Below are positions 2,772 to 9,871 of a DNA stretch of 64,000 nucleotides, piece by piece. The stretch covers positions 124,001 through 188,000 of the forward strand of contig CAJFCJ010000031.1 of the NCBI GenBank assembly GCA_904063045.1. Reading direction: 5' to 3'. The translations under genes were made by a program, and so were the position numbers. The DNA is from Dimorphilus gyrociliatus. Its lineage: Eukaryota; Animalia; Annelida. Position 1 is the stretch's first letter. Each line of letters starts with the position of its first letter. The notes under the pieces were generated by a model that worked only from the letters and a program-made list of their open reading frames with translations, ran no database searches and was not told where the DNA came from.

Positions 2772-4061
2772 ATGAATGCAACAACTACAATCTGGGAATT
2801 ATCAGTTCCATTTTGGGCAACGAGTATCAGCTTTATTTCAATAGAAATATTGCTTACAACGTTTACAAATATTCTACTCATGGTTACAATTTGCTATTCT
2901 CCGAATTTGAAGACGCCGGCGAATGCTTATCTGATAAATATTTGCGCAACAAATTTAACGTTAATGGGTAGTATGCTGTTATCACTGATTATGTTAATAA
3001 GGAGAGAAGTCTCAAACGAGTCAATCTTATCTAAAATTCAAATATTTCTACGTAATACTTGCTTCCTACAATATTGGGCCTTATTCGCAGCAATTGGATA
3101 TTACAGGAGCAAAACTTTGTACAAGCCTCTTGTTAATATCAGATCTAGGCGAAAAATCATCAAATTAACAACAGCCGGAAGTTGGTGTTTATCCATATTA
3201 ACAGGTTTAATAACAACGGCTATGTACTCGTCTACAAATAATTCTCTTTGCTGGAACGCCTTCAGGTCAAAAATATCATATACTAATACTTTTACGTTAG
3301 ATAATTTAGAGCCTTTGAATATAGTTGGTGTCTTCCTCTTCGCATCAGCATTCCTCTTTTGTCTTCTCATAATAGCAGCCTCCTACATTAAGATATTTAA
3401 TCCTTATTGCACTTCCCTAAAATCCGGTAGGAATAGAGTAGCTCCTTGGATAATCGACGATACGGAAGTTGTGAGAAAAGGAAAAAGATCTTATAGACCT
3501 TTTCCAACAACTGAAAATGATTCGACAATAGTGCATTATCAGAAAAAGAGTCATTCGGCATCAATAGATGAAGTTTTCGCGGCTTTGGAAAATCCAATAA
3601 GGGCTCAAATAAAGTTGGGTTATAATATTCATCAAAAGAATCTTCATAGAACAGTCAGTTCAAACAGTAATGGGTCGGAAATATCAAAATGTCCCGAGTT
3701 TAGTGATATTACGCCCGCGGCTCAATTTAGTAAGTTTAACTGGCTAAGGAATATTCACTCAACAACAAAGGCCAATCGTAAGGAGAAGTTAAGCCTATCA
3801 AGTGCTACAAAAAACAGCTTAATAATGGTGTTAACATTCATCATTTTGTCCTTTCCTTTACTTATTGTCTCTTTACCGGGCGTCTTCAAACAACGTGTAC
3901 AACTATCTACTTTTCATCACGTCATGCTCTCGTTTAATATCGTATTCTATTTCAACGCACCGGCCTATCCAATTTGGTATTTAATATTCAGTCGGCGTGT
4001 GAGGAATTGTTTGCAAAAATTGTATGATTCTTTATTGGCAAAGATGAACTTCAGACGTTAA
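2772..4061 (+). CDS. Single-exon orphan class A (rhodopsin-like) GPCR, 429 aa, with a long third intracellular loop
   Basis: Seven hydrophobic segments with class A spacing: TM1 TN(ILL), TM2 INICATNL, TM3 end AAIGYYRSKTLYKPL, TM4 W (GSWCLS), TM5 SYIKIF, TM6 FIILSFP, TM7 NAPAYPIWY plus helix 8 (SRRVR). N-terminal N-glycosylation sequon NAT. Confidence 0.85.
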   Translation: MNATTTIWELSVPFWATSISFISIEILLTTFTNILLMVTICYSPNLKTPANAYLINICATNLTLMGSMLLSLIMLIRREVSNESILSKIQIFLRNTCFLQYWALFAAIGYYRSKTLYKPLVNIRSRRKIIKLTTAGSWCLSILTGLITTAMYSSTNNSLCWNAFRSKISYTNTFTLDNLEPLNIVGVFLFASAFLFCLLIIAASYIKIFNPYCTSLKSGRNRVAPWIIDDTEVVRKGKRSYRPFPTTENDSTIVHYQKKSHSASIDEVFAALENPIRAQIKLGYNIHQKNLHRTVSSNSNGSEISKCPEFSDITPAAQFSKFNWLRNIHSTTKANRKEKLSLSSATKNSLIMVLTFIILSFPLLIVSLPGVFKQRVQLSTFHHVMLSFNIVFYFNAPAYPIWYLIFSRRVRNCLQKLYDSLLAKMNFRR

Positions 4062-5869: not shown

Positions 5870-8274
5870 ATTTCTTAAATAAAGATATCACCTACAGAGC
5901 TGCTTGTTGTAAATTCAACATCGCTGTTGTATATGTGATGGAAATGGAATTTTAAAACATCATTTTACTACTCTTCAACACTGAATATTTAAAAGAATCA
6001 CAAAGAAAAATCTATCATTTGAAATAGTGCCCTCTCTTTGGGAATTTAATAGGGAACGTTTCTACTTTCTCCTCTCTCTCTCTCTCAGAATACTTACAAA
6101 TATTTGTATTTTTTTTTGAACGGATTAGGTTATTATGAAAAAAATTTTTCACTTTTGCTTTTAAAACGAAAAGTTTAAGAAAAAATAATACGAATTTTTA
6201 AACCAACTTTTCTATTAAAGATAAAAACTTGAAATTTTAAAAAAGCAATATTGAAAAATTCTCAATTTTAATTTTTGGTCATATTTTAATTAACTGCAAA
6301 ATTAATTTCTTCTCTACAAGAACCAAAAAGGTCTTTAATGTACGTTCATTCTTTTGCAATATGATATTATATATAAAATGTTATATTTTCTTATAATTAA
6401 ATGAATTCTCATTCTTCGCAGCTAATGCTTTTAAATTTGTTATTTTTTAAATGAAAGTGTTTAGTAACGGAAAATGTTATTATTATTCGCAAATATTGGT
6501 CAAAGAAACCAAGTTGGACAAGTTAATCGTATAGGAAAAAATCAACCAAACATTGTTCTCTATTTATGAAACAGGCGCCAGTTTCTTCATATCGTTTCCC
6601 CTCTTCTCTATAGGCAAATAAAGAGATGTAAACTTTGCAAAAGAAGGGATAATAATTCCATCGTTTCTACTTAAAAAAGAGGATTAAATACCTCATTTAC
6701 TACATTTGTACTTGTTGGCACGAACAAAAAAAAGTGGGTAATTAACAATTGTTACACAAACATCTACCTTCTAATGAAAGCAATATTTTTTGTTTGTCCC
6801 TTTTTTTTTTCAATTCATCAATGTAATTTTCAAATGACAAACTCGAGATAAAAGAAAGATATTTAATAATTTCTCCGCCCAATAAAATCATTAAAAGCAG
6901 GTTGTTGTTTGTTTTTTTTCTTTGACATATTACAACCAATTTATTCGATTCTCTTATAGTAAATAAAGATTAAAAGAAAGTGAAATATATCATATATATA
7001 TATATATATATGAAATCTATAAATAGACACTAGATAATCTATGTAGTAGAATATAAACAATATTTGGTCAAAGATTATTAAATTTACTAAAATATAAGTA
7101 GCTTAAAGATATATGTAAAAACTATGTCAAATTACAAATTACAACACCGATTCGTGTAATATGAAATCTACATAAAGTAGACGTGACTTTTAAAAATAAT
7201 GATAATTTATGACGTCAAAAGTAGGAGGGAGAATATATATTTTACGTTACACTTATTCTTCACATTACTATTCATTCAATTGACACAGAGAAATCTCTAC
7301 AGTTGTCATTATCATCTAAAAGTAGAACGATATTAACAGAGCGTCTCTCTCTTTTTTTTCTTTTCGTGCAAAGTTGAAATAGCAATAATCAACACAAAAG
7401 TAAATGTAAGATTTACAATATTTGTATGATAATATATCTTATATATAGATGTTTAAATTATCGTTGAGCTCTTTTTTAATAAAAGATATATTAAACATAT
7501 ATATTAAATATTAGAAATCTTAATGATGAATAAATTTAGAAGCTAGAACGCATAGGATAAAATAGTTAAGATAAAACGTTACTTAAAATAGTTTCACACA
7601 AAATTTATATATATGAAAGGAAACAATCGATTTTCTCCCGATTAGTCGTCTCCTTCGATTAGTGAATCGTATTACAAACATCGAAAGCTTTTTGATATAG
7701 ACACACAAATTCACAAGGGTTATAAATGTTACAAAGTTAATAATAATCGTCACAAGTACATTTAAATATATATATATATACAGTAAAAATATACTGTATA
7801 TAAAATCAAATAGGCTTTTGATAAACCTCGTAGACAAACAAAAATAGGTCAACTCCTCCTATAAAATCAATATATACAGTAAAAATATTTCAATCGGAAA
7901 ACTATGGCACAGCCAAATTGCTAAAATATATGTATATATAGAGAGAAAAGGGATGAAAAATGATAGAAAGAGAGAAAGAGGGGAAAGAGATGGATTAGTA
8001 AAATAATATCTATATAGGTTGAAAATAACAAAATGGCACGAGACTTTTTAAAAAATAATTCATCTTGAAAATTTAGTTAGTACTTTAAAAAGAAAAGAGA
8101 GGAATAGACAAGGGAATGATAGATAAGAGAAAAATAGAGGAAAACTCTTAAATTAGGTTAAATCTAGCAAAGAAATTAGAAGATCTAAGTTTTCCAATAT
8201 AAATACGTTTTACTGAATAATGACGAAGAGAAGTATTTTCTATTTTTATTATCTTCAAAGAGAGCATCATGAAG

Positions 8275-9871
8275 TTATTCGTCGTCGTTGCTGGAACTTG
8301 ACTTTTTCGAAGACAGTTCCGGACGTAAGTTTCCGCATTCCTTGCAAGCGCATGTTTGCCATTCATACTGATTACTCTGTTCTTGTCTATGGGATAAACA
8401 AACACAAGGTGAATGATTATGCTATTGTTGAAAATTGATTAAAGTGTCAAATACTCTCTACAAACCTGGGTGCTGGTCTCTTTCCTTGGGATATTGGGGC
8501 AGTTGCCAAAGGATTATAGCTGGTACTATACGATGATGGTGGAATAGCTTCAACTTTGTCTTCGAGATGAGACTGATCGCCCATAACATTCGAGTTTGCT
8601 CCCCTCTCTGGCAGATGTCTCAAAGATGACGGAATATCGTTCAAATGATTTACTATTGCGTTTGCAATAGGAGAAGGATTCGAAGAAGAGCAAGAATTCG
8701 AAGAGCAAGACGAAGTACTTTCCGATGGCGAAATCGGATGATTACTGGTAAATGACATCATATCTGGCAAAGGGGTTGCCATGTAATTAGAAACGGATTG
8801 ATGATTATTCGTTTGCGATAGATGCTGATTACACGTTAAACCCGTTGGGTTTGACATCATATGCATTCCCATATTTTGTGGGCTTGTTAACTCGGTCAAA
8901 ACGGGACTACTAATTCCCGGCATTGACGGGCTCTTTATACCCGCCGTCGATGGACTTTTCATCATAACGCTAGAAGGGCTCTTCTCTAACGGTACAGACG
9001 GACTATTTACGCCTGGTGTCGTCGGACTCTCGGCGTTGTGAATTGGCGAAGCAATATCGTCTGAATTTTTGTCTTTGGGCGACTTACTACTACCATTCTT
9101 ACAAACTTGATCGACTTTTTGTTGTCGTAGTAGCCATACTTGATTTGCCATAACCTTCCTTTGTTTCGTTACAAGGGCGCACTTTTCGCACGCGCAGTAC
9201 TTGTACTTGCAATAGTATTTATGGGATTTTACAGGAGCAACTTCGTCGTGAACCTTACAACGTTGACAAGTTGGGCGACGTCTCTTTCTGTTTGAACTGA
9301 ACGGCATGCAGTTTAGGTTTAGAATCTGAATTAAAAATATAATCACTTACTCAGGCTCTTGTTCAATTTCGATTGGTTCCAAATCCAAGGGTGGTATTTC
9401 CTGCGAAATATGGGCCTGTTGAAGCATCATTCCTTGCCCTCCGCCCATGGGATTGTGATGCTGATGTGACATTTGAGGCTGCATGGAAGGCGGCGGTTGC
9501 TGATGCATAGATTGATGATGGGGCTGCATTTGATGTTGCAGTTGGTGAGACGAATGGTGCGGCGGGGGTTGTTGTACCTGTTGTAGTGAATGTGGATGGT
9601 GATGGTGAGAATGATGGTGCGAATGATGCTGTTGATGATGTTGTTGATGATGAGCGTTAGGATGCATGTAAGGTTGGACTTGCAGGCGCCTATTTGCTTC
9701 AACAGCTTTTTGCTGTTTTAGAGCTGCTTGAGCTCCCCTTCTCTCCACAATCAACATACATTTAGGACAGGTACAATTTCGGAACCTGCAATGTTGCTTA
9801 TGACTCTTAAGAAGAGATACAACACCATGATTTCTACATCGAGAACATTTAGGCTTTTCTTTGTCATCCAT
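8275..9871 (-). CDS. Doublesex/mab-3-related (DMRT) transcription factor with two DM domains (predicted exons 9871-9351, 9296-8466, 8386-8275)
   Basis: DM1 [26 protein letters not shown] and DM2 [34 protein letters not shown]. The two track ORFs are in one frame separated by a single TAA inside a GA|GTAAGT donor. A 54-nt intron (9350-9297) joins them in frame. Confidence 0.88.

Follow-up and report, generated by a model that had tools for sequence, protein, structure and literature searches.

To our knowledge, DMRT proteins are the one class of regulators that serves sexual differentiation across animals. Two DM domains in one polypeptide have been described for the nematode MAB-3/DMD-3/MAB-23 group ("group 3", PMC13089330), in which the domains are adjacent, the recognition helix of the N-terminal domain is shortened and divergent, and that of the C-terminal domain is nearer to the canonical form. 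Two-DM genes have been reported from C. elegans, ants and a spider (Panara et al. 2019), and ten two-DM proteins were counted in Pfam 26 (Chong et al. 2013). In a review-style paper of 2026 on C. elegans, two adjacent DM domains were described as nematode-specific and absent from other invertebrates. Here, a DMRT gene with two DM domains was analysed in the annelid Dimorphilus gyrociliatus, within a stretch of 64,000 nucleotides of contig C31 (hereafter the window, to which positions refer unless a contig is named). The genome of this species is compact (73.8 Mb), with a median intron of 66 bp and with neither trans-splicing nor operons, and DMRT genes were not mentioned in the genome paper (PMC7854359).

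A HMMER search with the public protein of this gene, P0002, returned 2137 matches, two of them with E < 1e-30: the exon-2 product of a diverged relative and a spider protein with three DM domains. No close orthologue from outside these worms was present among the 2137 matches. At least two DM zinc motifs were detected in 28 of the 151 proteins fetched from this search when P0002 was counted, that is, in 27 of the 150 others, and these came from spiders, a tick, mites, a wasp, a psyllid, nematodes and parasitic flatworms. The background given in the first-pass annotation of this DNA, with tandem DM domains as a nematode feature, was therefore too narrow. Examples outside the nematodes were found in Parasteatoda (Dmrt_like2), Nephila (three DM domains), Stegodyphus, Araneus, Amblyomma, Tetranychus, Brevipalpus, Odynerus, Diaphorina, Cichlidogyrus and Mesocestoides. 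These arachnid, insect and flatworm proteins resemble the C31 gene in carrying multiple, widely spaced DM domains in one non-nematode protein. In most arachnid examples, however, both helices are canonical and the domains of the same protein lie close together in the tree, which suggests internal duplication, whereas the two domains of the C31 gene are unlike each other and fall in separate clades.

The nematode group differs from the C31 gene in other respects. The helix deletion is one residue there and three residues here; the nematode domains are adjacent, whereas 145 residues lie between the zinc modules of the C31 gene; and no phylogenetic link was apparent, the nematode domains forming clades of their own and the first domain of the C31 gene looking Dmrt93B/DMRT3-derived. 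Judged by sequence comparison, the two-DM design arose repeatedly, contrary to the nematode-only statement of 2026, and the C31 gene is an annelid addition to a known type of protein, with a distinctive helix in its first domain. A literature search that did not take in Ji et al. 2023 (Russ J Genet), a survey of polychaete dmrt genes which is said to cover D. gyrociliatus and may already describe the C31 gene, brought up no account of an annelid DMRT with two DM domains.

Gene model and its conservation in a diverged relative

Two open reading frames of the same frame were listed on the minus strand of 9871-8275, at 9871-9347 (174 aa) and 9346-8447 (299 aa), with a TAA at 9349-9347 as their sole separator. 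Each contained one Pfam DM domain well above the gathering cut-off of PF00751 (27 bits), with 64.8 bits and E = 6.5e-18 for the first (DM1) and 60 bits and E = 2.1e-16 for the second (DM2). When intron 1 was removed, from the GA/GTAAGT donor at 9350 to the TTCAG/ acceptor ending at 9297, an in-frame junction codon GAT was obtained. The following features were assigned:

9351-9871, minus strand: exon 1, with the start codon at 9871-9869, DM1 and the His/Gln/Pro-rich linker, ending with two bases of a phase-2 split codon
9722-9856, minus strand: DM1 domain, Pfam PF00751, from the six-frame scan of the whole genome (G000:C31:133722-133856), with eight of eight zinc ligands
9351-9685, minus strand: low-complexity His/Gln/Pro-rich linker of about 112-115 residues, from about residue 63 to 178
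9297-9350, minus strand: intron 1, 54 nt, GTAAGT...TTCAG, phase 2, with the in-frame TAA at 9349-9347 forming part of the donor
8466-9296, minus strand: exon 2, with a basic stretch, DM2 and a Ser/Pro-rich region with conserved patches
9140-9280, minus strand: DM2 domain, Pfam PF00751, from the six-frame scan (G000:C31:133140-133280), with eight of eight zinc ligands and a full-length helix
8387-8465, minus strand: intron 2, 79 nt, GT...AG, phase 2, with a junction that matches P0002
8275-8386, minus strand: exon 3, 112 nt, with 36 whole codons, the conserved Cys-rich motif YEWQTC.CKEC and the stop codon TAA at 8277-8275
8245-8250, minus strand: AATAAA hexamer, probably the polyadenylation signal, read from the sequence 25 nt past the stop codon

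When the second reading frame was used in a word search, it retrieved the public protein P0002, which is DgyrCDS14188 of Dimorphilus gyrociliatus (487 aa). It was identical to the spliced model with both junctions exact, the product of exon 1 corresponding to its residues 1-173, and two DM stretches were recognized in it by Pfam, while no DMA domain was detected at E values up to 0.1. The gene is thus already public in GenBank as an unnamed CDS, and the novelty lies in its interpretation and not in gene discovery. The public model behind P0002 may come partly from gene prediction, and no transcript-derived protein was returned by the word search with exon 1 or by the exact-protein look-up of P0002. 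A short Logan contig, L011, was rejected as RNA support, being genomic with both introns retained.

The model bears out the structure proposed in the first-pass annotation, whose coordinates were all correct, namely one DMRT gene of a ciliated invertebrate with two complete, widely spaced and divergent DM domains, a 54-nt GT-AG intron (9350-9297) that fuses the reading frames, a further intron (8465-8387, 79 nt) with a last exon at 8386-8275, and a His/Gln-rich linker of about 110 aa, which is Pro-rich as well. The best explanation of these data, and in our judgement a likely one, is that the minus strand of 9871-8275 holds a single gene of D. gyrociliatus with three exons, DgyrCDS14188, whose product is a transcription factor of the DMRT family in which both DM domains bind zinc; on sequence comparison, a single two-DM gene is well supported.

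The same layout was found in a diverged relative, represented by Logan contig L009 (run SRR23372229), whose codons were compared with those of D. gyrociliatus exon by exon. The DM1 reading frame of the relative is open to a GA/GTGAG donor with the position and phase of intron 1 in D. gyrociliatus, and intron 1 (69 nt, no ATG in any frame, three further in-frame stops) is followed by the exon with DM2, by intron 2 (81 nt) and by a matching small last exon. The first in-frame ATG after intron 1 falls within the DM2 recognition helix, so that DM2 could not be translated there as a separate protein. For DM1 the dN/dS ratio was 0.007 and for DM2 it was 0.006; dS exceeded 1.7 in both and was thus saturated. 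The DM1 helix is identical in the two species, the one differing residue of the domain lying beyond it. The linker, for which dN/dS was not computable, showed 56% amino-acid identity with conserved patches and was fully open to the donor, and the introns had 59-63% nucleotide identity, on par with the flanks. Short conserved motifs were present in the C-terminal half, including YEWQTC.CKEC of the last exon. The zinc module of each DM domain is intact, the codon comparison showed that purifying selection on both is very strong, and the residue composition showed a disordered-looking, His/Gln/Pro-rich linker that would tether the two.

Several minor features were noted around the coding region. 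The motif of exon 3 (window 8278-8385, minus strand; L009 6928-7026) extends to YEWQTC.CKEC.NLRP and bears a faint likeness, with different spacing, to the Cys-rich C-terminal tails of the Dmrt93B/DMRT3-type proteins P0022, P0019 and P0028. An out-of-frame ATG lies directly after an AG at 9888-9886 (minus strand), 17 nt upstream of the main start, and the relative likewise has an out-of-frame ATG directly after an AG, at about 5367 of L009, 31 nt upstream of its main start. If in a 5' UTR, this ATG would open a short upstream reading frame overlapping the start codon in both species. The preceding AG may mark the junction of an upstream 5' exon.

Zinc modules, helices and relatives of the two domains

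Both domains contain the CCHC and HCCC zinc sites, and their eight ligands aligned with C76, C79, H82, H91, C95, C100, C102 and C105 of human DMRT1. The helices were compared with human DMRT1 (PDB 4YJ0), whose numbering is consistent with these ligands and whose base contacts are Arg111, Val119 and Arg123 according to a preprint, which refers for them to Murphy et al. 2015. DM1 showed a gap of three residues just after the Arg111 position and Ala and Gln at the positions of Val119 and Arg123, and thus departs from the canonical helix; the Arg111 position and basic residues are retained. The altered DM1 helix of the first-pass annotation was accordingly confirmed as a three-residue deletion. 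DM2 aligned without gaps. Its helix, reported as conserved in the same annotation, is indeed of full length with Val119 and Arg123 kept, but it has Gln at the Arg111 position, with Arg in the next one.

Among 210 sampled DM domains (from proteins P0002-P0166 and the loci), the three-residue deletion was found only in the four dinophilid DM1-type domains, that is, in both species and at the paralogous locus described below. A one-residue deletion at the same point of the helix was present, in the same 210 domains, in the first domains of nematode MAB-3-type proteins and in the second domains of parasitic flatworm proteins. Among the multi-DM groups sampled, three (nematodes, flatworms and the annelid) therefore have a shortened helix in one DM domain of a pair. 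This looks like a recurrent feature and may bear more generally on the way in which a DNA site is shared between two DM helices.

A separate phylogeny of DM1 and DM2, called for in the first-pass annotation, was built from 73 DM domains over 56 columns, with an unresolved backbone. The three DM2-type domains formed a clade (support 100/99), DM1 of the C31 gene paired with DM1 of the relative (100/97), and the two DM1-type domains of contig C4 paired with each other (98/86). In the best tree all four DM1-type domains came together, in a group that was weakly supported (71/42). The two domains were thus recovered as distinct types, DM2 being a well-supported clade which, among the sampled domains, was found only in these worms. 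The first and second domains of nematode MAB-3-type proteins formed starred clades of their own in this tree, without annelid domains.

The best matches of DM1 were Dmrt93B/DMRT3 proteins, whose zinc modules were 65-72% identical to it (for example P0022, P0046 and P0118), and the nearest single row in the tree was the 93B-type gene of D. gyrociliatus itself on contig C6. By alignment and tree, DM1 is closest to the Dmrt93B/DMRT3 class and carries a lineage-specific deletion of three helix residues. The likeness to this class lies in the zinc module; the C31 gene differs from it in the absence of DMA, in the shortened DM1 helix and in the presence of a second DM domain. A plain Dmrt93B orthologue was considered and ruled out, as P0002 is without DMA and a canonical 93B-type gene with DMA is already present on C6.

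The six-frame scan of the entire 77.9-Mb genome gave only eight DM matches, two pairs of which lie less than 1 kb apart on the same strand, and for this reason the two-DM arrangement is not attributed to chance. Three matches belong to single-DM genes with canonical helices, which group with Dmrt99B/DMRTA2 (contig C9), DMRT2 (C5) and Dmrt93B/DMRT3 (C6). Of the remaining five, two are those of the 9871-8275 gene and three are on contig C4. DMA matches adjoined only the C6 and C5 genes in the whole genome, and the surroundings of the Dmrt99B-class gene on C9 gave none. The match on C5 (G000:C5:3900452-3900544, 40 bits) is about 1.3 kb from the DM domain of the DMRT2-class gene. In arthropod genes the DMA pattern is the opposite of this one, with DMA in the DMRT2-class gene on C5 and not in the Dmrt99B-class gene on C9.

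The paralogous locus on C4 was placed as follows:

G000:C4:929000-938000 (locus L012), minus strand: multi-DM locus with reading frames at 6299-6547, 3783-4028 and 3205-3639

Two of its reading frames are of DM1 type, each with the three-residue helix deletion, and one is of DM2 type, starting about 150 nt after the second DM1-type frame. A small exon at about 3731-3701 can join these last two in frame. The intron before DM2 is in phase 2, with a GA/GTAAGT donor nine residues ahead of the first Cys, as in the C31 gene. Both genes therefore share the position and phase of this intron as well as an arrangement in which a deletion-bearing DM1-type domain precedes one of DM2 type. The C4 paralogue differs from the C31 gene in its short linker, which probably includes the micro-exon, and in having no His/Gln tract and no YEWQTC motif. 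From the order of the domains and the intron before DM2, which are shared by the C31 gene, the C4 gene and the relative, the two-domain architecture is older than the duplication that separated C31 and C4. The extra DM1-type reading frame of C4, at 6299-6547, lies 2.3 kb upstream of the other two and could either contribute a third domain or serve as an alternative first exon.

Alternative readings and possible function

Two readings deny that DM1 and DM2 normally act in one protein. That two tandem single-DM genes were falsely fused by annotation could be argued from the DM domain in each reading frame and from an in-frame ATG (9307-9305) four codons ahead of the acceptor, which is present in D. 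gyrociliatus only. The gap between the frames, however, is just 54 nt, with no AATAAA hexamer within intron 1 and no room for a promoter, in a species without operons or trans-splicing (PMC7854359); the corresponding gap of the relative lacks an ATG, the first in-frame one lying within the DM2 helix; and both the relative and the C4 paralogue keep the position and phase of the donor. Moreover, in neither species is the low-complexity linker interrupted over its more than 100 codons, despite saturated dS; by a hand estimate, chance would leave about 110 codons of unconstrained AT-rich DNA open in about 1 of 10,000 cases. We consider a false fusion hardly credible, and one gene is preferred because exon-intron structure, domain order and intron position are shared by the relative and the C4 paralogue. 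It is also very unlikely, although somewhat less so, that the DM exons of a single locus are used mainly in separate isoforms, DM1 alone through intron retention and DM2 alone through skipping of exon 1 or an internal start, in a split that could be sex-specific. Such usage has a precedent in Parasteatoda Dsx2, whose two DM domains occur in different isoforms (Panara et al. 2019). In both species an AG right before the start region may point to a 5' exon that could in principle skip exon 1, and the length of intron 1 is divisible by three in each (54 and 69 nt), which would happen by chance in about 1 of 9 cases. Against this, the in-frame stop after DM1 is one that a phase-2 GTAAGT or GTGAGA donor makes automatically, and it recurs as TGA in the relative, with its GTGAGA donor; the C4 paralogue has such a stop as well. 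If retained, the intron would place a premature stop far from the last junction, the usual mark for mRNA decay; the relative has no start codon for a DM2-only protein; the phase match of exons 1 and 2 is kept in two paralogues and two species, as co-translation predicts; and short introns are spliced efficiently in D. gyrociliatus (PMC7854359). The sex-specific intron-retention switch put forward in the first-pass annotation is consequently unsupported, the stop being automatic and the intron of the relative containing three more stops and no ATG.

With both domains in one polypeptide, the protein is proposed to read a composite DNA site with two unlike heads on a flexible linker of about 115 residues, much as nematode MAB-3 does. 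Alternatively, DM1 could serve as an in-cis partner helix for DM2, of the kind that is otherwise gained by DMRT dimerisation, and an intramolecular dimer is plausible by analogy with MAB-3. The two helices appear to keep complementary DMRT1 contacts, DM1 the Arg111 position and DM2 the positions of Val119 and Arg123; such retention would fit a model with two heads or an in-cis partner, but is no proof of it. The same helix has another side: shortened and with Ala and Gln at the positions of Val119 and Arg123, DM1 may no longer read bases. The gene would then encode one two-DM protein in which DM1 has become an interaction or autoinhibitory module of a DMRT with a single DNA-binding head. We regard this as unlikely, since the entire DM1 helix is unchanged in the diverged relative, the Arg111 position and basic residues are kept, and the first DM domain of the nematode MAB-3 type also has a helix shortened by one residue. 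That nematode domain, shortened helix included, still contributes to DNA binding.

D. gyrociliatus is extremely dimorphic, with females of 1 mm and males of 50 micrometres. Beyond its three conserved single-DM genes, the genome contains only two lineage-specific multi-DM genes, on C31 and C4, which makes them obvious candidates for a role in sex differentiation; for the C31 gene, such a role in sexual differentiation is a guess based on what the family commonly does. A more elaborate proposal would take the C31 and C4 genes as a multi-DM family of the dinophilids' own, in which the register-shifted DM1 and the Arg111-less DM2 form an obligate intramolecular pair, each giving the contacts lost by the other, bind a composite non-standard site and drive the dimorphism of females and dwarf males. 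This proposal as a whole is speculative, and we think it distinctly improbable.

About 4 kb downstream of the Dmrt gene, on the plus strand of the window, an intronless reading frame of 429 codons for a rhodopsin-family receptor was observed at 2772-4061 (Pfam 7tm_1, 61 bits).
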